Shown piece after piece: positions 23,084-64,000 of a DNA stretch of 64,000 nucleotides (its first letter is position 1; each line of letters begins with the position of its first letter). The position numbers and the translations under genes were made by a program. Below the pieces are notes generated by a model, which saw only the letters and a list, made by a program, of their open reading frames with translations, had not been told where the DNA came from and did not search any database. The DNA lies in the sequence record MT811961.1. One strand, given 5' to 3'.

Positions 23084-23100
23084 TCTATATTACCAATGTG
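23084..23100 (+). promoter_or_regulatory. Candidate early promoter (phiKZ-type TATATTAC)
   Basis: TCTATATTACCAATGTG upstream of the 23129 gene; the same motif occurs at 60221. Confidence 0.55.
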
Positions 23101-34933: not shown

Positions 34934-36327
34934 TTAACCTGGGACGAGCATATCTATTAACAACTTTATAGTTGAGTCTAACCATATGGACTTATAACAA
35001 AGAGTTAAAAGATATAGAATGAATGCCAAAGAAATACCAGACTACACTGGCTATGTTATTGACGCCATCGGCGTCATAAAAAATAAGACTACTGGAAATT
35101 TACTAAAAACCTACGTAAATGACGCTGGTTATCCTGTGCTTCGCATAAAACATGACAAGCGCGGTCATGCCATAGTTCGTTTGCATAGACTCGTTGCATT
35201 GACACATAACAATCCACCACCCAATCACGAGGAAATGGTTGTTAATCACATCAATGGCGATAAAACCGACCCAAGAAGTGTAAATTTGGAATGGCTCACC
35301 AAACGAGAAAACAATATCCATGCGATTTTGACCGATCTCAATAAGGACGCCATCGACATACAAATAAAATCACTTGAAGACGGTCGAGAGTTTATTTTTG
35401 AATCTCTTACTCGTGCTGCACTCTTCTTCAAATGGCCACCGACTAAGTCTAGAACTTGGTTAAAATACGGACACGTTGATCCAGAAGGCAAATATGTCTT
35501 TAAATATGTTTGTGATCCCAGAGATTTTGAAACATTAAAAGACACCAAGTACGTAACGGCAAAAGAACTACCACGGAAAAAAGTTTTTGACTCTGTTTTA
35601 GCGAGAGACATTAACACAGGAAAAATTTTAGAATTTAAATCTGTGTCCGCTGCTCAGCGAGAGTTAAAAGTTTCGTCTGTTGTACTGCGAAAAAGACTAC
35701 GCGAAAAAGACCAGTTTCCAATTGGTTCGTTTTCAGTCAAGTACAAAAAAGACATTACCGAATGGGAAATTTGGACGCCAGAAAGAGTAGCCAAAGAAGA
35801 TAGGTCAAACAAAAAAGTAGTCAAGGCAATTGATGAGAAGGGTAATGTGTTTACGTTTCCTAGTCTCTATGCCTTTTACGTTTTTACTGGTGGGAAATCA
35901 AGGTCCACCACGAATGTAAAAACCGCCATAGCCAAAACTGGCAAATACAAAAATTTTATAGTTACATACTAAAAATCCCTGTCGAAATAAAACTCCGTGA
36001 ATTGCTGGGACGTCACACACTATAGAAATAACCAAAACGGAATCCGAAAGGATATGCGGCAACGGTCGTCTAAAGACAGAAAAGATATTTCTATTGTCAT
36101 ATGTGTTAATAGCACTAAGTGACCAAAAGAGTGGGTATCAGCAGCTATGGGCCTAAGTATTGTCGAGATGACAAGATACGGTCAGTGTTCACAGACTATC
36201 GAAAGCGCCTTCGGGCAGTGAGTAGAGTAGCGTAAGTCCTATCACAGGCGGCGAAGTGCGGAGCCTCTAATTAGCACTGAAGAAGTGAGTAAGGTTAGAG
36301 TGATGATATAGTCGAACTAACATGTTG
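34934..36327 (+). mobile_element. Group I intron (IA-like, 1394 nt) in the vRNAP beta-prime gene
   Basis: The 5' exon ends in U and the intron ends in G. Core elements: P AATTGCTGGGA (36000), Q TATCAGCAGC (36136), R GTTCACAGACTA (36187), S ATGATATAGTC (36303), P3 CTCCGT/GCGGAG. Splicing restores GADFD|GDMLSCN. Confidence 0.9.
35019..35972 (+). CDS. Intron-encoded HNH homing endonuclease (NUMOD4-HNH-3xNUMOD1, I-HmuI-like; 317 aa)
   Basis: HRLVA...VVNHINGDKTDPRSVNLEWLTKRENNIHA; N-terminal IPDYTGYVID; three C-terminal F.S...A helix-turn-helix repeats. Confidence 0.92.
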   Translation: MNAKEIPDYTGYVIDAIGVIKNKTTGNLLKTYVNDAGYPVLRIKHDKRGHAIVRLHRLVALTHNNPPPNHEEMVVNHINGDKTDPRSVNLEWLTKRENNIHAILTDLNKDAIDIQIKSLEDGREFIFESLTRAALFFKWPPTKSRTWLKYGHVDPEGKYVFKYVCDPRDFETLKDTKYVTAKELPRKKVFDSVLARDINTGKILEFKSVSAAQRELKVSSVVLRKRLREKDQFPIGSFSVKYKKDITEWEIWTPERVAKEDRSNKKVVKAIDEKGNVFTFPSLYAFYVFTGGKSRSTTNVKTAIAKTGKYKNFIVTY

Positions 36328-36495
36328 GGGGACATGTTGTCATGTAACTACGTGTGGAGTCGTGACTCTGTACAAGAAGTAGACGAACTAATGGGAAGCT
36401 GGAAAAACTATCTATCTCCTAATGGTGGTCTAACCGTTAAATCATTCGATGACGTTTCCGAATGGGTGCTGTCATTTATGACTGGTAACGAATAG
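36328..36495 (+). CDS. Virion RNA polymerase beta-prime subunit, exon 2 (55 aa)
   Basis: Open frame GDMLSCNYVWSRDSVQEVDELMGSWKNYLSPNGGLTVKSFDDVSEWVLSFMTGNE-stop. It supplies the GD of DFDGD. Spliced product is 547 aa. Confidence 0.85.
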   Translation, partial: GDMLSCNYVWSRDSVQEVDELMGSWKNYLSPNGGLTVKSFDDVSEWVLSFMTGNE

Positions 36496-36503
36496 GAATT
36501 AAA

Positions 36504-37886: not shown

Positions 37887-39436
37887 TAAAACTCAAATAG
37901 AATAACCATAATTTTATAGTTAGATTTTATCTAGGTATATGATTATGAAAAGATTAGATTTCATCGCCAGAATTAAAGCTAAGTTTGGCGACATGTTTAC
38001 ATTCGAAAAAACGGTTTATGTCAATAACAAGACAAAGGTAATACTTACTTGCAAGGTCCATGGTGATAGGGAATACCTTCCTGGAAATATCCTTAGACCG
38101 GCGCATCGAGGCTGTCCTTTCTGCAATGGCATTAAAGACAGAGAAGCTTTTGTCAAAGAGGCCAAGGAAAAATACGGCGATGTTTATGACTATTCCAAAA
38201 TAGATTATAAAAACATCTCAACTGAAGTGACGGTGATCTGTAATAAACACGGTCCATTTCAGGCCATTCCGCTCAGACATCTCGAAGGCAAACGCTGTAT
38301 GGAGTGTTTCCGAGAAAGCAAGCGCCTTACATTCGATGAGTTTGAAAAACGCGCCGAAGAAATCCATGGCAAAAGTTATCTTTTTCTAGAGTCCTCTTGG
38401 ATTTCAGGAAGACACCATGTCAAAGCCGTATGTAAAAAACATGGAGAATTCGAAGCAAGGGCCAGTAGCATTCTGGCCGGCACCGGATGCAAAAAATGCT
38501 CCGATGAAAAACAGCGTCGGGCAGTCGAAGATGTTATTGAAGATATCAAAAAGATACACGGAGATCGATATTGCTTTTCTGAATTTGTCTACAAAGGCAA
38601 TAAAACAAAAGTTACTTTGATCTGTCCAGACCACGGGCGATTTGAAAAAACTCCAAATGACATACTTACAAATAAGGGCGGCTGTCCTACATGCAAAGAG
38701 TCAAAAGGCGAGCGACAAATCCGAATGTTTCTGGAGCGAAAAGAAATCTCCTTTGAGCGCGAATACCGAATAGAGGGTTTTAACTTTAGATGGGATTTCT
38801 ATCTGACTGACTTTGATATCTATGTCGAGTACCATGGTATTCAGCATTATAAACCTGTTGAGCGCTTTGGTGGTTTTGCAGCACATAGGGAGTGTGTCGT
38901 CCGCGACTTCGAAAAGAAGAAGATCGTAAAATCCCTAGGGGCCAAACAGATAACCATTTCGTGTTTGTCCGGTAAAGCCCCGGAAGAAATTCTCGAAACT
39001 CGGCTAAAAAGAATGAAACTAATCTGATTCTATTATGCTTTTACACGGCATAGTCCACTTAAAACCTACCTAATTGCGGGAACTGCTTATACGTAGTAAC
39101 TACTACTTTGTCCTGGAAACAGAGATAAATACCTCATCCAGTAATGGAGGCATGAGGAATAGTGAAAACGTTACTATCTTGCAGAATCGACGCAGCGAAG
39201 TCCCTAAGTCTATTGAGAGATATGGGATGAGTTCAGAGACTATCGAAAGCTTAACCCTTGTGGCGACATAAGGGGGACAATAGCCCAAGGCCAACATACC
39301 TTGGGGGAAGCGAGTAGAGTACAGCCAGCAAAAGGCGCTGGTGTCATTGTGACTTAAATGGAAACGGTAGGGCCTAGTCTAGACTCACGCAGTTTAACTA
39401 GGTATGATATAGTCCTGCACTATGGAGATAGTGTAG
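37887..39436 (+). mobile_element. Group I intron (IA-like, 1550 nt) in the vRNAP beta gene
   Basis: The exon ends in U (GAT) and the intron ends in G. Core elements: P AATTGCGGGAA (~39072), R GTTCAGAGACTA (39231), S ATGATATAGTCC (~39404), P3 CCTACC/GGTAGG, P9 GCACTAT-GGAG-ATAGTGT. Confidence 0.9.
37939..39027 (+). CDS. Intron-encoded homing endonuclease: four Cys/His repeats plus a Vsr/DUF559 (EDxHD-like) nuclease (362 aa)
   Basis: Four repeats F...(H/Y)G.Y.......V...CxxHG.........GCxxC, then SKGERQI...WDFYL...VEYHGIQHY. Confidence 0.85.
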   Translation: MIMKRLDFIARIKAKFGDMFTFEKTVYVNNKTKVILTCKVHGDREYLPGNILRPAHRGCPFCNGIKDREAFVKEAKEKYGDVYDYSKIDYKNISTEVTVICNKHGPFQAIPLRHLEGKRCMECFRESKRLTFDEFEKRAEEIHGKSYLFLESSWISGRHHVKAVCKKHGEFEARASSILAGTGCKKCSDEKQRRAVEDVIEDIKKIHGDRYCFSEFVYKGNKTKVTLICPDHGRFEKTPNDILTNKGGCPTCKESKGERQIRMFLERKEISFEREYRIEGFNFRWDFYLTDFDIYVEYHGIQHYKPVERFGGFAAHRECVVRDFEKKKIVKSLGAKQITISCLSGKAPEEILETRLKRMKLI

Positions 39437-45803: not shown

Positions 45804-46232
45804 ATGTCTTCTAAATTCGATATGATCAACACCATGGCTGAAACTGTACAAAAGAACGTGAAGCTTACTGGCAACCACGTTAGCGGTGACAAATCAGTAA
45901 TGGAGTCGGTTCTACCAGAAGGCCTATCAATGGCTACTCTGGAACAAGCAGAAGAGTTTGTGGCTGACTTTGGTGCAGCGTCTCTTATTGCATCTGCACG
46001 TGTTATGGCAGAAAACAATCTAGACCACATCACTACGCACTTTGAAACTACTCGCGGTTCTATTGAACATACGGTAGACAAAGAAATTGAAATTGCCGGT
46101 GAAACCAAACAAGGTTATGCAGTAACAGCATTCAACATTGTAACACATGGCAAAGACGACGTTCTATCTTACGCTACTGACCTAGTAGCAGGCATGGACT
46201 TCGGTACAGGCGATCTGGAAGCAGACGCTTAA
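45804..46232 (+). CDS. Acidic hypothetical protein (142 aa)
   Basis: AAGGA SD; first gene after the candidate early promoter. Confidence 0.7.
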   Translation: MSSKFDMINTMAETVQKNVKLTGNHVSGDKSVMESVLPEGLSMATLEQAEEFVADFGAASLIASARVMAENNLDHITTHFETTRGSIEHTVDKEIEIAGETKQGYAVTAFNIVTHGKDDVLSYATDLVAGMDFGTGDLEADA

Positions 46233-46273: not shown

Positions 46274-46594
46274 ATGACTACTCTTTATGGTCGTGGCCGT
46301 CGTACTTTTGGTGATCGTCGTCGTTCAGCACCTCGTGATGAACATCGCAATGGTCCTCGCATTGTTCATAAGCAACCTAAACAAGATCCTAATGTTGATC
46401 GTGTTCTTGTTGGTATGCTTGCAGAACTTTGCAAGAATTCTTTCAAACTAGCTGAGTTAGGTAAGCGTTGGCCTGGTCGTGTTAAACGCGAAAAGATTCC
46501 TGCCAACACTGGCCGTGCCACTGTCATTACAGTGCGGGCACAAATCGAAGCGCAGAAAGTTGAACTTGCCAAATATGCGGGACTGCTAGCATAA
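46274..46594 (+). CDS. Basic protein with an Arg-rich N-terminus (106 aa)
   Basis: GGAG SD; N-terminus GRGRRTFGDRRRSAPR. Confidence 0.7.
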   Translation: MTTLYGRGRRTFGDRRRSAPRDEHRNGPRIVHKQPKQDPNVDRVLVGMLAELCKNSFKLAELGKRWPGRVKREKIPANTGRATVITVRAQIEAQKVELAKYAGLLA

Positions 46595-46683
46595 TGGAAG
46601 ATCAAGATTACGAATGCGATCCAAACACGGCGTTTGAAGATCCAGAGGAATCAGACTACGAAGACGGCATGTTTGCCGACTAA
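46594..46683 (+). CDS. Candidate 29-aa acidic micro-protein
   Basis: MEDQDYECDPNTAFEDPEESDYEDGMFAD; TAATG overlap with the upstream stop; below the ORF-track size cutoff. Confidence 0.5.
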   Translation: MEDQDYECDPNTAFEDPEESDYEDGMFAD

Positions 46684-46695
46684 GTCTTAATAACA

Positions 46696-47117
46696 AGAGG
46701 TCATAATTTATGGCCTCTGATTATTACGATTTAAGAGACACAGTTATCCAATGTTGTTAGAAACGATATGTGTAACTGAGATGTGCGGGCATCTTCAACT
46801 TGGCGGAATGTCATGATTGAACCACAGCCTCTGGAAATAAGTCTCCACCCGCTAACTGTGTCTCTTTACCCAATTACCAAATGGTAATACCGCGCAACAG
46901 CGCACTTTCCAATTAACTTCTGGATTACATTACAGAAGCAACTTAGCATCTAATGTGTGCATGCCACCTTGTCTCTGGCGGGTGGCTCAATTTCTCTTCA
47001 GGAAGCGTCCTAGCGTGTAGTTCGTTTCTACAAGGGTCATTGACCTCACAAAAGCTATGAAACGTGTGAGTGCTCACCTCCTTTGGGGGTGAGCCTATCT
47101 CGTTCCTTTTTATTTTT
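46696..47117 (+). ncRNA. Candidate structured non-coding RNA of unknown class (~420 nt)
   Basis: No ORF of 60 aa or more. Contains a perfect 14-bp long-range stem (46733-46746/46853-46866), several further hairpins and a possible pseudoknot, and ends in a terminator. The strand is inferred from flanking genes and the terminator. Confidence 0.45.
47072..47117 (+). terminator. Rho-independent terminator
   Basis: GCTCACCTCC-TTT-GGGGGTGAGC followed by a T-rich tract. Confidence 0.7.
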
Positions 47118-47158
47118 AACCTTTGGTAGAGAACCTACCATTGAATGGAGAACCCATT

Positions 47159-48169
47159 ATGTTTACTCGTGAATTAAACCTATCTGAAATTCTTAACATC
47201 CCTACTGAAACAGCTGTCCTTGTTGATCGCCTTGTTAAGTCAGAAACACTTACCTGGGAACAAATCTTTAAAAGCGAATTGCTGTGGGCATGGGGCTGGA
47301 AACCTGTTAAAGATCAACCTGCAATGGTTCGTACAAAAATTGATTATGGTACCAACAAACTGTATGTCATTACTGCACGTAGTCACACCCTTTGTCTTGT
47401 GACAAAAGATATCGATACGGATACACTGCAAGGAAAGATCCGTGAGAAATTGCCACTAGGTAATGTTATGCCAAGTCTGGAGAAGGTTCTTGCTGAACAC
47501 CAAGAACTAGTCATGGAACACAGTATCCGAGCAGCTCAAGAAGTATTTGAATTAGAAGAGTATACAAGAGAACGTCTATACGTCGACTATGATAATACTG
47601 GCATGCATCCAAAGAAAGAAATTGGTGATTGGGTTGAATCATCAGCTTTCGGTGCACATGCGATCACTGCGCGACAGTACTATGAGAATGGGGAATACAA
47701 AATCGAAAACTCTCCAGAAGTACTTATCTCCAATGTCATTGCAGACAATCCTGCGGCGTCTCGTACTGAGTACCAGCTACATGTACCGCACCTGCCTCGT
47801 GTTGAAACAACAGTCAGTAACTTCAATGAACGTCGTATCGTTGTCGCAAAATCCGATCATGGTCATCCGAAACTCAAAGGCGTATCTGTTGTTACCGAGT
47901 ACAATAACCTTGGTCTTGTCCTTGATGTGAAACGAGAGGATGCAAATCTAACAAGGTTCTACTACACAGAAGGCAAAGAAAAGTTACTTGCCGCCACGTA
48001 CCTAGAAACAACAACGTCGTTCCGTGACTCCCTTATCTTTAAATACGATTACCAATTCAATGATGATGGTACACTGTACAGCATTACCATTCGTAATCGT
48101 ACAATGCAGTATACAAAAGACTGGTCACTAAACGAAAAAGAAAATGTTGTTGCCAAGTTTTATTTTTAA
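47159..48169 (+). CDS. Hypothetical protein with YD/RHS-like C-terminal beta repeats (336 aa)
   Basis: ATG 47159 has a GGAG SD. The C-terminus has TEYNNLGLVL, RFYYTEG and YDYQFNDDGTL. Confidence 0.65.
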   Translation: MFTRELNLSEILNIPTETAVLVDRLVKSETLTWEQIFKSELLWAWGWKPVKDQPAMVRTKIDYGTNKLYVITARSHTLCLVTKDIDTDTLQGKIREKLPLGNVMPSLEKVLAEHQELVMEHSIRAAQEVFELEEYTRERLYVDYDNTGMHPKKEIGDWVESSAFGAHAITARQYYENGEYKIENSPEVLISNVIADNPAASRTEYQLHVPHLPRVETTVSNFNERRIVVAKSDHGHPKLKGVSVVTEYNNLGLVLDVKREDANLTRFYYTEGKEKLLAATYLETTTSFRDSLIFKYDYQFNDDGTLYSITIRNRTMQYTKDWSLNEKENVVAKFYF

Positions 48170-48266: not shown

Positions 48267-49133
48267 TTAAAGGTTGTTAGCTACGGCTTGTGCGCCGCCA
48301 CGTAGACCTACACCACCTGTTGCGTCTTCCATCAGATCAGGGTTGATTTGAGAGATAAACGGTTTAAGTGCTGCTGGAGAGTAACCCTGCTTATTGATCG
48401 AGTCTAGGTACGCTTTAGCTAGATCAGCAACTGCTACAACTTGGTCACTTGTTAGTGTAAGTGCAGTAAAGTCAATTGCATGCTCTACAGCTGTACGTGC
48501 CGTGCCGTACTCCAATGCCGCTTCATTAGGAACCGAGATTGGTTTCATGTTAGAACATAGGTACGCGAAGTCAACGCCAGTTAGGTTGTGGTTCGGTTGA
48601 ATGAACAACACAATCATAGAAGTTAGATGATCAAGCAGTTCAGGGTAACCATCGTCAGCATATGCTTGGTACTTGATTACACCTGGAGCTCCGGTCATCG
48701 GATCTTCCATTAGATCAATCATCCAGCGAGACAAGTCTTTGTAGATAGGCATGCCGCGGTATTCATTCCAAACAAAGTTCGGGTTAGAACGTTCACGACT
48801 TACCTTTGTTAGAGTCTGGTGCATTTCACCTGACTTACTAACCTGAATCTCTTCAAACTCAGCTGTTAGTGTTGAGTTTAGACCGGTGATTGATTTCGCC
48901 TTGGTTTCTACCAAAGCTTTAAGGCGCTTGGTCATACCAGCGCCATCTGGCAGCCACTTAAAGCCAAGTGGTGCCTGTAGAAGAACTGGCATTACTTGAG
49001 GTCGCATGTAGAATGCTGCCTTCGTCCAGTTCTCTGGGTCTTGCATGTGACCCAGCTGAGAGCCAGTGCTAATGTCCATCACACGAGTGTGGGCAGATAG
49101 CGGGTTCTCGGCATTCAAAAGTGCTTCAGCCAT
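48267..49133 (-). CDS. Tail tube protein (288 aa; phiKZ gp30-like)
   Basis: Immediately downstream of the sheath gene; size and position match phiKZ-like tail tubes; GAGG SD. Confidence 0.7.
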   Translation of the reverse strand: MAEALLNAENPLSAHTRVMDISTGSQLGHMQDPENWTKAAFYMRPQVMPVLLQAPLGFKWLPDGAGMTKRLKALVETKAKSITGLNSTLTAEFEEIQVSKSGEMHQTLTKVSRERSNPNFVWNEYRGMPIYKDLSRWMIDLMEDPMTGAPGVIKYQAYADDGYPELLDHLTSMIVLFIQPNHNLTGVDFAYLCSNMKPISVPNEAALEYGTARTAVEHAIDFTALTLTSDQVVAVADLAKAYLDSINKQGYSPAALKPFISQINPDLMEDATGGVGLRGGAQAVANNL

Positions 49134-49167
49134 TTTGGGTTTCCTCTATTTAACTAAGCTTTTTAGA

Positions 49168-49184
49168 GAGGGGCAAAGCCCCTC
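49168..49184 (-). promoter_or_regulatory. GC-rich hairpin without a U-tract between sheath and tube genes
   Basis: GAGGGGC-AAA-GCCCCTC on the plus strand. Confidence 0.45.
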
Positions 49185-49187
49185 GCA

Positions 49188-51218
49188 TTAGGAAAGGCGG
49201 TTAACGGTAATGTTGTATTGACCAACAGTACGCATTGGATCCGCAGCAGCATTGATGTCCAGAGCCCAAGAGAAGCCACGTAGACTATCGTCAGGAGTAA
49301 TAACGGTTGTACCGCTAATTACCATCTTACCTGCGAAACGACCTTCGATTAGTTCAGCCCAGTCATCATCAGAACGCAACTTGAACTGATCTTCTGTCAA
49401 ACCAGTAGAACCAGTATTGATAGACCAGTGGTAACGTGCTAGACGTTTCAAGTACGTTAGGATGTTAACGTATTGACGACCGTTAAGTACAGATGTGTCT
49501 TCTTCGTAACCAGTTTGGTACGCTGCCCAGAATACGTCAGACATGCTGCGTTTCTGAGGGTAGTTGATACCAGTTGACCAGAATTGGTCTTGAAGCTCAT
49601 CAGGCTTAAATGTATGAGTAAGCTTAACAACTTCAGATACTGAGTTGCGAGTACGATCTGTGTAGTCACGCTGTGCGTTAAGGAAGCCAGAACCTGCACC
49701 GCCGAACTCTGCGAATTTCTTCGCAACGTCAACGAATGAAGAACAACGACGACCATAGATAGAAGAAGCTGCTTGACCTTCGGAACCCCACACACTAAAG
49801 CGACAAGCTTGTGTACCGTGGATGATAGACTCTGGGTTCAATAGGCCACGAGCAACAAGTGCTTGGCCGATTGCTAGCTCAGTAGCTAGATCGTTTTCTG
49901 CTTCTGATGCGATGAATGTACAAACGTCGACAGTAATGTCGTCACGCTTAGACATACAGTCAAGGAAAGCGTATTTCGTTTCCAATGCGAAGCCAGAATC
50001 TTGAAGACCACTGAATGGGTAATCAGCCCAAGAGTTCAGAGGTTCTTCTGGATTATTCCAGTCACCCTCTAGGTAAGCTTTAACAAGCTCATCTAGTTTC
50101 TCTTCAGAAACTGTACCGTCTAGACCACCTTGTAGATAGTTAGTTGTGATACCGTCCATTACTAGGCTGTTGTCTACAACAGGACCAGCTTGAAGAGTAG
50201 AGTAAGCACGACCTTCGTAGTCTAGCTCACCGAAGATGTTCATTTCTTCTTTAGCTTTTACTTTCGCGCCAGCTACCGCAGACTCTGCCGTGTAAAGCAG
50301 TTCTTGTAGTTGGTCGATAAATGCCGAGTAGAAATGTACGTTTTGTACTGGACCAAAGCGAGGAATGTTACCAGCTGTAGTATCTTCCCACTGTGTTTGT
50401 AGTTTACGGTAATCGTAAACTTGGTTGGTCTTGATGTTGGTCATACCAGGTTTGAAGCTGAAGTCAATTGAATCAGCAGACAATAGTGATTTTTGGATCA
50501 CTGGGGTTGCACCAACTTTGGCACGTTTCATCCAAGAGAAGCGGTAAAGAATAGCTTCTTGATCGCGCTGTGCGAATAGAGAAGAAGGTTGTGCAGAAAG
50601 AGAGCTTTCTTGTGATAGACGGAAACCAACATTGTTGCCATCTTCACCAACTTCGCCGATGAATGCCATTACAGGATAGATCTTCGAAGTCTGACCTGTA
50701 CTACCAGTCCAAGTACCGTCAGTTACGACTTGCTTGTTCCAGTTGTACATATCAACGCCAGTCATGCGAACAACACGAGCCAGGTAACCCATTTGGGTTT
50801 TACCTGAGTCAACGCGTTTGCCGTTGATATCTAGTTTGTATTGACCGTTAGGCAATAGTTCCCAAACTACGTTTTCGTTTTCAACGACTTCAACACCGAT
50901 ACAGATTACCGGAGCACGAGCATCGTCAGCGAACAAACGTTTTGTTGCAACAAGCTGACCAGCGCCAGTGGTTGTTGTCATCAAATGAGTTTGGTGAGAG
51001 TAGAACTTACTTGTTTCTTCAAACGCCTTGCTACCGTACATTTTTGTAAGATGAGCACCTGCACCAAACTGAATACCAGCACGGCCTTTTGGAGCCATGA
51101 TAAAGTAAAGCGGACAGTTTTGTGGGATGGCTTGAAGTTCTACTGGAGTTTCGCCGATCGACTCATCCTTGAAACCATCCAAGTATGCGCGTGGCGTAGC
51201 TAAAGTAAATTGTGCCAT
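49188..51218 (-). CDS. Contractile tail sheath protein (676 aa; phiKZ gp29-like)
   Basis: Size, position between the tube gene and the terminase cluster, and a sheath-like C-terminal region (G(I)NYP...VFW..YQT.Y.EDTSVLN). Confidence 0.82.
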   Translation of the reverse strand: MAQFTLATPRAYLDGFKDESIGETPVELQAIPQNCPLYFIMAPKGRAGIQFGAGAHLTKMYGSKAFEETSKFYSHQTHLMTTTTGAGQLVATKRLFADDARAPVICIGVEVVENENVVWELLPNGQYKLDINGKRVDSGKTQMGYLARVVRMTGVDMYNWNKQVVTDGTWTGSTGQTSKIYPVMAFIGEVGEDGNNVGFRLSQESSLSAQPSSLFAQRDQEAILYRFSWMKRAKVGATPVIQKSLLSADSIDFSFKPGMTNIKTNQVYDYRKLQTQWEDTTAGNIPRFGPVQNVHFYSAFIDQLQELLYTAESAVAGAKVKAKEEMNIFGELDYEGRAYSTLQAGPVVDNSLVMDGITTNYLQGGLDGTVSEEKLDELVKAYLEGDWNNPEEPLNSWADYPFSGLQDSGFALETKYAFLDCMSKRDDITVDVCTFIASEAENDLATELAIGQALVARGLLNPESIIHGTQACRFSVWGSEGQAASSIYGRRCSSFVDVAKKFAEFGGAGSGFLNAQRDYTDRTRNSVSEVVKLTHTFKPDELQDQFWSTGINYPQKRSMSDVFWAAYQTGYEEDTSVLNGRQYVNILTYLKRLARYHWSINTGSTGLTEDQFKLRSDDDWAELIEGRFAGKMVISGTTVITPDDSLRGFSWALDINAAADPMRTVGQYNITVNRLS

Positions 51219-51436
51219 TTTTGTTTCCTCTAGAATTCTATTTGAGGTATTTCGTTTAAATTTAAACCTCTGCTTCTCAGCAGATTCGAAACGCTTAGGA
51301 CGAATCGAATAGGATGTCCCTGTCTCCTAAGCCTAAGCTGAAACGGGGACAAGACCTATACAATTGGATTGATCTAGGTTACAAAAAACATCCTAAACAA
51401 ATAAGCTTATTTTGATTTTAACCCAGGAGAACAAAA

Positions 51437-60220: not shown

Positions 60221-60237
60221 TCTATATTACCTACATG
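60221..60237 (+). promoter_or_regulatory. Candidate early promoter (TATATTAC)
   Basis: TCTATATTACCTACATG in the divergent intergenic region. Confidence 0.55.
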
Positions 60238-62624: not shown

Positions 62625-64000
62625 TTATTTTGCGAGGAAGATATCTACAAGCTTGGTTTGCAGAGTACCGATTCCTTTTACTGTTAACAGTCCAGCATGA
62701 CGAGGTTCATCCAGAATCACTGTAGCGTCTTCTACGGCGACATGATGAACTATCTTAGTCAATGGGTTACGTCCAGTCAAATACGTATCCAGGGCGTCTA
62801 GGAAGCCTTTACGGAAGTGTTCTGACTTAACCACTGGTCGATGTTCATAGATAACCACATTGTCATATGCTACCGGCTGTGTCATCAGAATCTGAATAAA
62901 CGACATCGAAGGCATAACAACTCGATCTTTAGGAACTACACGCAGATGATCATAAAGGGCATCGACAGTAACGTTCTTAGGATCTAATACAAATGTACCT
63001 TCTCCAACAATAACAAGATTGCAATGAAGTGACTTGGCACGATCAAGTGCACCGGCAACAACTTCTTTAGAAATCTCATCCCAGTTAAGGAAAAGGAATA
63101 CTGCATTGTTTTCAATACCACGTTCAGGATATTCAACTTCTTCATAGCGACGAAGTAGCAAACGTCTTGTTTCAGGGAAACGTTCTGCATCCAAGGCCTC
63201 ACGATAAATCAATAGATCCACTGGTGTGATGCGCTGGTCTCTTAGCCAACCAGAAACAATACACATAAAGCGATCTGCTAGTTTGTCATCCAAGAATTCA
63301 AACGAAGGATCTATTTTTGCGATTTGCAGGAAGTTTTCCGGAGCTACATGTTTGCCATAGAATAATGCGCTCAGTATCTCAGCATAGTACAAGAACTTCT
63401 TCGGATAGACAGTGTGGTCGAAAGGTAAACCTTCTATCATCTTCGCAGCGGTCTCTACAGAGCCTTTAGCGCACAAGTTAAGGCCTAACACCTCTGAATA
63501 CGTTAAGAAGCGCTGAGGGACTTCTGAGGCGTCTCCACGATATCCTTTGATAATTCGCAGACATGCATCCTGTAGGTCATCACTGCCACGCAGAAACAAA
63601 CGACGTACAAGACTACGGTGGCTAAATGATATCGGTTTTTCATCGAACTGTACCGTTACCTTTTTATGGGCCAATACCTCACCGAGTAGATCACGAGGGT
63701 CTCGTTCAAGATACCAGCGACTAAGTACTTTCTTAACCATGCGGCCAAAGCCACGATAGTAAGAGATGAAACACGCAAAGCGAAGAATGTCTTCTGCATC
63801 CATACACAGATCTACTGCTGTATTTAGAGCATAGCTACTTGCTTCGAAGTCATCCGTATTGCCGGCTACCTTAGCCAGGATGAATAACCGATTTGCTTTT
63901 GTTTCTTTTGTAAATGAATACGATTGGGATACAACAAAACTAGTGATCCCTCTACCGCGTTGCTTGATCTGTTCCTCATAGCCATTGAAAGCCAAGTCGG
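62625..64000 (-). CDS. Divergent Ro60/Rsr (TROVE-domain) RNA-binding protein, probably 5'-truncated by the window edge
   Basis: Collinear Ro60-like blocks: LFILAKVA...ALNTAVDLC...ILRF, GFGRMVKKVLSRWY, FSHRSLVR, RITPVDLL, and C-terminal GLLTVKG. The frame is open to 64000. Confidence 0.72.
   Translation of the reverse strand, partial: DLAFNGYEEQIKQRGRGITSFVVSQSYSFTKETKANRLFILAKVAGNTDDFEASSYALNTAVDLCMDAEDILRFACFISYYRGFGRMVKKVLSRWYLERDPRDLLGEVLAHKKVTVQFDEKPISFSHRSLVRRLFLRGSDDLQDACLRIIKGYRGDASEVPQRFLTYSEVLGLNLCAKGSVETAAKMIEGLPFDHTVYPKKFLYYAEILSALFYGKHVAPENFLQIAKIDPSFEFLDDKLADRFMCIVSGWLRDQRITPVDLLIYREALDAERFPETRRLLLRRYEEVEYPERGIENNAVFLFLNWDEISKEVVAGALDRAKSLHCNLVIVGEGTFVLDPKNVTVDALYDHLRVVPKDRVVMPSMSFIQILMTQPVAYDNVVIYEHRPVVKSEHFRKGFLDALDTYLTGRNPLTKIVHHVAVEDATVILDEPRHAGLLTVKGIGTLQTKLVDIFLAK

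Follow-up and report, generated by a model that had tools for sequence, protein, structure and literature searches.

Phages of the phiKZ kind transcribe their genes themselves; in those members that have been studied well, a nucleus made of protein keeps transcription and translation apart. To our knowledge, almost nothing is known about RNA-level control in these jumbo phages beyond a few short leader-derived small RNAs (sRNAs). In phage 201phi2-1, 8 of 11 sRNAs arise by premature termination in 5′ untranslated regions (5′ UTRs), and one is conserved in phiKZ, EL and PA3 (PMC11512511). Here we describe a gene-free gap of 475 nt (positions 46684–47158) in Vibrio phage vB_pir03, located between two genes that are both read from the plus strand. 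The window that we analysed comprises 64,000 nt and is a 100% match to positions 1–64000 of record MT811961.1 (286,284 bp); window and record coordinates are identical. The gap very probably harbours an RNA structure on the plus strand, about 400 nt in length, that is functional and maintained by selection, and we tentatively favour the view that it is a cis-acting long leader or intercistronic element for the downstream gene, which encodes a protein of 336 amino acids (aa).

vB_pir03 is a phiKZ-like jumbo phage. A tblastn search with its tail tube gives 217 matches to phiKZ-type phages (BONAISHI, Goslar, PCH45 and RP12 among others), the Pfam families phiKZ_gp29PR (sheath), PhiKZ_VTX and Peptidase_S80 are found in its relatives, and several split RNA polymerase beta and beta-prime genes are annotated in its record. 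The phage is probably nucleus-forming.

Fold, conservation and coding status of the gap

The anatomy of the element (Table 1) was drawn from single-sequence folds and from the RNAalifold consensus of vB_pir03 and Vibrio phage C-ZP2022 (OM319461.1). All stems listed in an initial annotation of this DNA are present, as established by a sequence check and a repeat search. The 14-bp helix P1, formed by AAGAGACACAGTTA and TAACTGTGTCTCTT, is 100% complementary; no other perfect inverted repeat in the window reaches 14 nt with its arms at most 200 nt apart. The inner stem of hairpin H0 consists of 10 bp including one G·U pair, and ATTACC/GGTAAT (P5), CTTCTG/CAGAAG (P7), GCCACC/GGTGGC (P9), CTCACA/TGTGAG (P11) and the G+C-rich hairpin that follows P11 are likewise found. 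TGTAG/CTACA (47016–47032) also exists, but it lies outside the consensus fold and loses one pair in C-ZP2022.

The stem AGATG/CATCT (46779–46794) has a loop, GCGGG, that is complementary to a downstream CCCGC, and a pseudoknot had been proposed for this pair. The pairing itself is real and contains one compensated base pair, but it forms an ordinary nested helix (P1a) for which no knot is necessary. P1a would compete with the small AGAUG/CAUCU hairpin rather than knot with it, because the outward pairing of five of the six loop bases from a 5-bp stem would cause strain.

On the plus strand, the 442 nt from position 46684 fold with a free energy of −140.8 kcal/mol, corresponding to z = −5.9 relative to dinucleotide shuffles. 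The minus strand of the same 442 nt gives z = −3.2.

Alignment of the vB_pir03 and C-ZP2022 gaps shows 87% identity (54 substitutions, 8 gapped columns), and positions 46884–46923 reach 95% identity. Third codon positions of the flanking genes are only 65% (106-aa gene) and 59% (336-aa gene) identical, which suggests that the gap changes at about one-third the rate of nearby near-neutral sites and that, compared with the synonymous sites next to it, it experiences purifying selection.

The two-sequence RNAalifold structure contains 140 pairs. Of these, 8 are compensated on both sides and none is broken; in 11, a single partner differs, mostly through gain or loss of a G·U pair. The eight compensatory double substitutions are spread over six helices, and this one pairwise comparison with a related phage thus lends the proposed structure support from covariation. 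Substitutions in P10 and P11 either fall in internal loops or yield G·U pairs. Since RNAalifold rewards compensated pairs, we also carried out an unbiased test, in which the observed substitutions were counted on each phage's own minimum-free-energy fold and then re-placed at random 5000 times. Double changes occur 6–7 times versus 0.9 expected (P ≤ 0.0002). Broken pairs on the plus strand number 9–11 versus 17–20 expected (P about 0.002), whereas those on the minus strand number 18–21, equal to the chance expectation. This strand asymmetry, which arises through tolerated G·U pairs, points to a plus-strand RNA and not to a DNA cruciform. Alleles of the C-ZP2022 type are seen again in two further sequencing runs, one of them a seawater metagenome, and a partial third variant in sequencing runs spans only 47010–47300.

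GenBank annotates three tiny open reading frames (ORFs; 29–35 aa) in the gap, at 46783–46887, 46953–47060 and 47083–47172, while the C-ZP2022 record annotates none. In C-ZP2022, an insertion of 4 nt disrupts the 34-aa ORF, the 35-aa ORF is cut to 26 aa and shows scattered non-synonymous changes, and no small ORF of at least 12 aa on either strand is conserved between the two gaps. None of the three annotated ORFs being preserved, the non-coding status first assigned to the gap is borne out, and we reject a small-protein explanation. A pseudogene is rejected as well: tblastn of the neighbouring proteins and of sister-phage genes from the matching position finds no match in the gap and no trace of a dead gene. 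The element is structured, plus-stranded, conserved and devoid of coding potential.

Homologous gap sequence occurs only in the C-ZP2022 lineage, to which a seawater-metagenome contig from Logan (L013) is nearly identical. Searches of 50,697 phage records with blastn and tblastn return vB_pir03 and C-ZP2022 only. No further copy of the gap was found in IMG/VR (queries: two proteins from the flanks and two DNA patterns, matched exactly), in JGI metagenomes (tail-tube profile and DNA pattern), in GTDB genomes (tail-tube profile) or in a 5.8-billion-protein database (downstream protein and tail tube).

More distant sister lineages are sm033, L005, L008/L009 and L010/L011, with tail-tube identities of 75%, 70%, 68% and 55%, respectively. 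Neither blastn nor nhmmer aligns anything in the same-site gaps of sm033, L005, L008 and L010 to the vB_pir03 gap. A covariance model of Domain 1 has no match on the related loci with default filters; with filters off, matches are at noise level, and the single full-length match at the corresponding site, to the L005 domain, scores a non-significant 10.5 bits (E = 0.62). The gaps of sm033, L005 and L010 are nevertheless stably folded (Table 1), and in sm033 and L005 the fold is again a multi-hairpin domain under a long closing helix (15 bp in L005). H0 is kept in both, with a conserved AAGAG/CUCUU stem base and an inner stem of different sequence. In sm033, the hairpin adjoining the Shine-Dalgarno (SD) sequence is also retained; its stem differs (CCGG/CCGG), but its loop AGAAC is the same and is followed by the same AUGGAGAACCCAU. 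Given these stable but non-alignable folds at one site, a structured RNA appears to be needed at the locus despite fast change of its sequence, and different structured RNAs in sister lineages suggest a rapid turnover of such elements. The 475-nt gap of vB_pir03 and C-ZP2022 is the longest among the lineages that still have a gene of the 336-aa kind downstream.

Table 1. Coordinates and properties of the gap element, its base-pair changes from vB_pir03 to C-ZP2022, its flanking genes, recurrent motifs and same-site gaps in sister lineages
Feature	Position	Strand	Remarks
29-aa ORF	46594–46683	+	Highly acidic; last cistron of the prohead-protease operon; annotated in vB_pir03 and C-ZP2022; upstream boundary of the element
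H0, extended hairpin	46688–46726	+	Inner stem 46696–46705/46709–46718, outer stem 46688–46693/46721–46726; directly past the stop codon; terminator-like, weak U tail
ATTATTAC	46720–46727	+	6/8 match to early-promoter core TATATTAC; weak candidate promoter, start would fall near 46733
Domain 1	46733–46866 (134 nt)	+	Closed by P1
P1	46733–46746/46853–46866	+	14-bp closing helix of Domain 1
P1a	46785–46789/46848–46852	+	5 bp, stacks on P1
P2	46751–46784	+	Domain 1 hairpin
P3	46796–46819	+	Domain 1 hairpin
P4	46832–46847	+	Domain 1 hairpin
Domain 2	46873–47070	+	Row of six hairpins
P5	46873–46888	+	Domain 2 hairpin
P6	46892–46903	+	Domain 2 hairpin
UUUCCA, candidate anti-SD	46906–46911	+	Putative long-range pairing with UGGAGA 47146–47151 (RNAalifold columns 228–233 with 471–476)
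P7	46917–46938	+	Domain 2 hairpin
P9	46963–46986	+	Domain 2 hairpin
P10	46987–47043	+	Domain 2 hairpin
P11	47045–47070	+	Domain 2 hairpin
G+C-rich terminator-like hairpin	47072–47094	+	Stem 47072–47081/47085–47094
T-rich tract TTTTTATTTTT	47107–47117	+	About 12 nt beyond the G+C-rich hairpin; length differs between lineages
Hairpin adjoining the SD	47124–47140	+	Loop AGAAC is a partial copy of the GGAGAACCC ribosome-binding motif
336-aa ORF with SD	47147–48169	+	GGAG 47147–47150, ATG 47159
Compensated pair, P1	46741:46858		C-G to U-A
Compensated pair, P1	46744:46855		U-A to C-G
One-sided change, P1	46745:46854		U-A to U·G
Compensated pair, P1a	46785:46852		G-C to U-A
Compensated pair, P3	46802:46812		G-C to A-U
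Compensated pair, P4	46832:46847		U-A to A-U
Compensated pair, P9	46968:46981		C-G to U-A
Compensated pair, G+C-rich hairpin	47074:47092		U-A to C-G
Compensated pair, G+C-rich hairpin	47077:47089		C-G to U-A
TCTATATTAC copies	Window 23084–23093, 60221–60230; record 64484–64493, 70427–70436, 88646–88655	+	
AAATAGA(G/A) sites	49150–49165, 51240–51255	−	Upstream of minus-strand genes
AAATAGA(G/A), further sites			Upstream of 37939, 24395 and 15818
sm033 same-site gap			252 nt; fold z = −2.4
L005 same-site gap			216 nt; fold z = −5.5
L010 same-site gap			699 nt; fold z = −6.4

Possible roles of the element

We read the element as an RNA on the plus strand, on which both flanking genes also lie. 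If it acts in cis, H0 would close the prohead-protease operon, and the folded RNA would set the level of transcription or translation that reaches the 336-aa gene, which is probably the regulated gene. Such control could operate through pausing or attenuation at the G+C-rich hairpin and the U tract, through occlusion of the SD by 46906–46911 or by the AGAAC hairpin, or through both. As a by-product, a stable leader-derived RNA of roughly 350–400 nt might be set free. We infer both the transcript ends and this mechanism from sequence. The cis-acting leader is ranked first because the element adjoins the next gene in the same direction, because a structured leader recurs at the site across lineages with distantly related downstream genes, because a possible means of SD occlusion is built in (46906–46911 with 47146–47151, and the AGAAC hairpin), and because premature termination in 5′ UTRs is the main documented source of sRNAs in 201phi2-1 (PMC11512511).

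Two motifs recur upstream of genes in the 114 kb that we scanned. TCTATATTAC matches the early-promoter core of phiKZ and 201phi2-1, which is TATATTAC (PMC7058600), and has five non-coding copies situated 34–93 nt upstream of plus-strand genes. AAATAGA(G/A) recurs about 20–25 nt before start codons, including those of the tail sheath and tube genes, and may be the late-promoter or start-site motif of the phage. A motif scan of the gap for TCTATAT[TA]AC and AAATAGA finds no copy of either. The 336-aa gene thus has neither recurrent motif immediately before it, which is consistent with transcription running through the gap. Elsewhere in the record, the TCTATATTAC variant TCTATATAAC is located upstream of the genes at 45804, 78386 and 83756, and three copies are followed by GGTATAGA or GGTAGATAGA.

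The initial annotation had proposed an undescribed non-coding RNA (ncRNA) ending in a terminator. A structured plus-strand RNA of no known family, with compensated pairs and no conserved ORF, agrees with this proposal, but its discreteness is in doubt, as the gap contains no motif copy and the putative terminator is non-canonical: the G+C-rich hairpin is present and compensated, but the T run is displaced from it. In a terminator scan, only a weaker alternative stem (47085–47107) abuts the T run, and the clear terminators elsewhere in the genome are single hairpins of 10–13 bp with an adjacent T run. We consider a long leader or intercistronic element at least as likely as a discrete ncRNA.

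Several observations weigh against a selectively maintained leader. The candidate anti-SD pairing comprises 6 bp, both sides of which are invariant, and hence comes without covariation, and the U tract is not adjacent to the G+C-rich hairpin. A typical 5′ UTR in phiKZ measures 31–40 nt (PMC8244752). In addition, GGTAGAGAACC at 47125–47135 loosely resembles a TAGAG-containing motif found upstream of the tube and sheath genes, and if it were a proximal promoter, it could place the structured part of the gap outside the 5′ UTR. The covariation derives from one pairwise comparison and thus effectively from two independent lineages. Compared with the genome's own 442-nt windows (GC-corrected), the plus strand of the gap has a milder z of −2.6 and ranks 14th of 1516; thermodynamics alone is therefore suggestive, not decisive. 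Finally, other short intergenic regions of the vB_pir03/C-ZP2022 pair are more conserved than the gap (95–97%), from which non-coding conservation appears to be a general trait of these phages.

It is possible, though doubtful, that the gap encodes a stand-alone trans-acting ncRNA of about 340–390 nt, which would start near 46733 from a degenerate promoter of the early type, ATTATTAC, end at the G+C-rich hairpin with the U tract and scaffold, decoy or sponge a protein or RNA of the phage or its host. In vB_pir03/C-ZP2022 and in sm033 alike, TATTAC comes after H0 in an equivalent position, and a start about 8–10 nt downstream of it would hit the first base of P1. The element is also flanked by a terminator-like hairpin on one side and by a second hairpin with a U tract on the other, its long unpaired, invariant stretches (for example 46904–46916 and 46939–46962) are possible binding sites, and the structured RNA would be a unit of its own if the promoter-like GGTAGAGAACC served the downstream gene. 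ATTATTAC is identical in C-ZP2022 and, if active as a promoter, would start the RNA at about the first P1 base. However, it matches the core at only 6 of 8 positions and differs from the TCTATATTAC copies in both core and flanks, whereas the five non-coding copies upstream of plus-strand genes are exact. No complementarity of at least 14 nt to the element is found in the first 114 kb of the phage, and a homologue in one lineage only would be unusual for a core trans-acting RNA. A more specific version appears unlikely, in which a discrete RNA of about 350–400 nt acts in trans, perhaps scaffolding an RNA-binding protein or nuclease of host or phage origin or serving as its decoy, and the sister lineages carry their own fast-evolving versions. 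If it were true, lineage-specific, fast-evolving RNAs at one locus would represent the signature of an arms race.

We regard it as distinctly unlikely that the gap is a compound terminator or insulator combined with a messenger RNA (mRNA) stability element at the operon boundary. Such an element would terminate or process the mRNAs of the protease operon and shield their 3′ ends, and neither the size nor the details of the fold would matter beyond that. The conservation of H0 in sm033 and L005 would fit this role, as would the closing helix of the L005 domain, which directly precedes a U run, and the generally high conservation of terminator-bearing intergenic regions in vB_pir03/C-ZP2022. The full turnover of sequence with structure kept also looks as if any stable fold sufficed. 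Nevertheless, about 400 nt with 12 helices far exceeds what termination needs, given the single 10–13 bp hairpins that serve as real terminators in this genome, and the internal helices P1a, P3 and P4 as well as the long unpaired stretches (95% identity) appear to be under selection.

A functionless relic is very improbable. Domain 1 would in this case be similar to a miniature inverted-repeat transposable element (MITE) whose 14-bp terminal inverted repeats are the two strands of P1; alternatively, the gap would represent a dead paralogue from the neighbouring repeat-protein family. Perfect inverted repeats do bound Domain 1, the gap is about 220–260 nt longer than in sm033 and L005, and both of these lineages have three similar-sized genes versus one in vB_pir03. 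However, Domain 1 exists as a single copy in the record and has none in 216 kb of related DNA, its flanks (GATTT and TACCC) show no target-site duplication, and tblastn reveals no similarity to the neighbouring gene products. The divergence of the gap is also about one-third of the local synonymous divergence, and the inverted repeats themselves carry compensatory changes, with U·G tolerated on one strand only.

The other suggestion of the initial annotation, a DNA-level element such as a replication origin or attachment site (or a packaging site), is hardly credible: a long non-coding stretch with many inverted repeats would suit it, but the G+C content (0.43–0.45) resembles that of the flanks, neither an AT-rich region for unwinding nor a switch in skew is seen, iterons and direct or tandem repeats are absent from the gap, the deficit of broken pairs is confined to the plus strand, an asymmetry that a cruciform would not give, and the annotation of those parts of the record that we inspected includes no integrase gene.

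An RNA of about 400 nt with evolutionary support, situated at the boundary between a head-maturation operon and a fast-evolving gene family, represents a testable case of RNA regulation or of a new ncRNA. Its practical value is limited for now, as only two lineages carry the element, and taken alone, it leaves the picture of the kinds of phage RNA elements unchanged.

Neighbouring genes and other non-coding stretches

The plus-strand operon upstream of the gap encodes a virion protein, the S80 prohead protease and an 88-aa ORF, followed by a terminator, a 142-aa ORF, a 106-aa ORF and the 29-aa ORF. The 29-aa ORF has identities of 0.93, 0.97 and 0.90 to its C-ZP2022 counterpart at codon positions 1, 2 and 3, respectively, and a small ORF is also present at its position in sm033, L005 and L010.

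The 336-aa protein is fast-evolving, with 81% amino acid identity to its C-ZP2022 counterpart, and shows features reminiscent of beta-hairpin repeats. Pfam and PHROG searches assign it to no family, and there are only weak RHS- or MORN-like leads. It is weakly similar to the product of the sm033 gene at the same position (E = 9e-4). Beyond the 336-aa ORF lie the convergent tail-tube and sheath genes. Where vB_pir03 has this single gene, sister contigs have two to three tandem genes (285–388 aa) beside the tail-tube gene (L003:6965–9662, L005:10968–13805 and L008:10928–13304). The products of these tandem genes are barely similar to the 336-aa protein, indicating a fast-evolving gene set.

The gap had been described as the largest non-intron gap of the window. 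With any introns counted in, gaps 2015–2781 and 35973–36503 are longer. The gaps at 35973–36503 and 39028–39436 have no Rfam match at gathering thresholds. The most stable 442-nt fold of the window relative to GC is found at 48805–49246 on the plus strand; it runs antisense to the tube–sheath spacer and to the beginning (5′ part) of the tail-tube gene. With −174 kcal/mol and z = −4.6 versus the genomic background, it is more extreme than the gap, and no long inverted repeat accounts for it. A further stretch of about 2.4 kb, beyond the window at record positions ~66290–68750, contains only "hypothetical proteins" of about 30 aa on both strands and is probably non-coding; ARAGORN finds no transfer RNA (tRNA) in it, and Rfam at gathering thresholds no family.

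Comparison with described RNA systems

None of the 4227 models of Rfam 15 matches the window at gathering thresholds, and the related loci likewise give no match. At E ≤ 10, the region 46400–47400 yields three chance-level matches (snoR66, DLEU2_5 and bicoid_3), all far below threshold. ARAGORN detects 0 tRNA or transfer-messenger RNA (tmRNA) genes in the window and no tRNA in the next 50 kb. These empty searches agree with the initial annotation, which had recognised no tRNA, tmRNA or riboswitch signature. The structure of the gap thus appears to match no described RNA family, and to date only one narrow phage lineage is known to carry it.

A group I intron was rejected, since RF00028 has no match in the gap even at E ≤ 10 and there are no exons that could be joined: the 29-aa ORF has its own stop codon, and the 336-aa ORF its own SD and ATG. 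The same model does find a group I intron elsewhere in the record, at 82646–83025 on the plus strand (54.7 bits). That intron is situated outside the window, between two ORFs annotated as RNA polymerase beta-prime fragments.

Bacterial and phage Y RNAs (YrlA/YrlB, Yrl1/2), the partners of Ro60/Rsr, resemble the element in that a long helix closes a multi-branched domain (PMC4201824, PMC12135203), and the vB_pir03 record annotates a "TROVE domain" protein at 62625–64175. Characterised Y RNAs measure 80–130 nt, and the criteria for the YrlA type include the motif GNCGAAN0-1G close to the 5′ end and a tRNA-like D/T module (PMC4201824). We rejected a Y RNA because the element is 3–4 times larger, because neither this motif nor CGAA occurs on either strand of 46600–47200, because there is no match to the Y_RNA or YrlA models of Rfam and no tRNA-like call by ARAGORN, and because the element lies 15.5 kb from the annotated TROVE gene and on the opposite strand, whereas about 4 kb and the same strand would be expected. 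The TROVE annotation itself (516 aa, Ro60-like) was not reproduced by Pfam hmmscan (E ≤ 0.01) or by a PDB sequence search. Directly upstream of the TROVE-annotated gene and on its strand (minus), just beyond the window, the non-coding record positions 64176–64534 include a G+C-rich structured stretch of about 280 nt (z = −5.3) that contains GAUCGAAUC; the record fills this region with three "hypothetical" ORFs of about 30 aa. As a possible Y-RNA-like partner, this stretch is more plausible than the gap element.

The large RNAs GOLLD and ROOL span about 580–800 nt. Like these ornate RNAs, which phages and prophages often carry, the gap element is a phage-borne, multi-helix RNA of several hundred nucleotides with no known function when found (PMC12286853, PMC5737381). 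It differs in being smaller (about 400 nt), in belonging to one narrow lineage and in not lying beside tRNA genes, and the gap has no match to their Rfam models at E ≤ 10.

Riboswitch and attenuator leaders share with the gap a structured leader in which a hairpin and U tract precede the ribosome-binding site, a possible anti-SD pairing and mutually exclusive helices (here AGAUG/CAUCU versus P2 and P1a). In contrast to these leaders, the gap contains no known aptamer, according to Rfam, and it is much longer than typical riboswitches.

The closest described relatives of the element, compared by description only, are the 5′-UTR-derived sRNAs of phiKZ-like phages, namely sRNA005 of 201phi2-1 and the gp182 leader of phiKZ (PMC11512511). 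These are shorter than 250 nt by their authors' filter, whereas the gap element covers about 350–430 nt, and its RNA would measure about 360–385 nt from the candidate start at ~46733 to 47094–47117. Their start and termination sites have been mapped, whereas motifs suggest the ends of the gap RNA, and the downstream gene is a different one. Nevertheless, like the gap element, they come from the same phage group, are structured and positionally conserved, lie upstream of a late or virion-associated gene and place a hairpin before its start codon.

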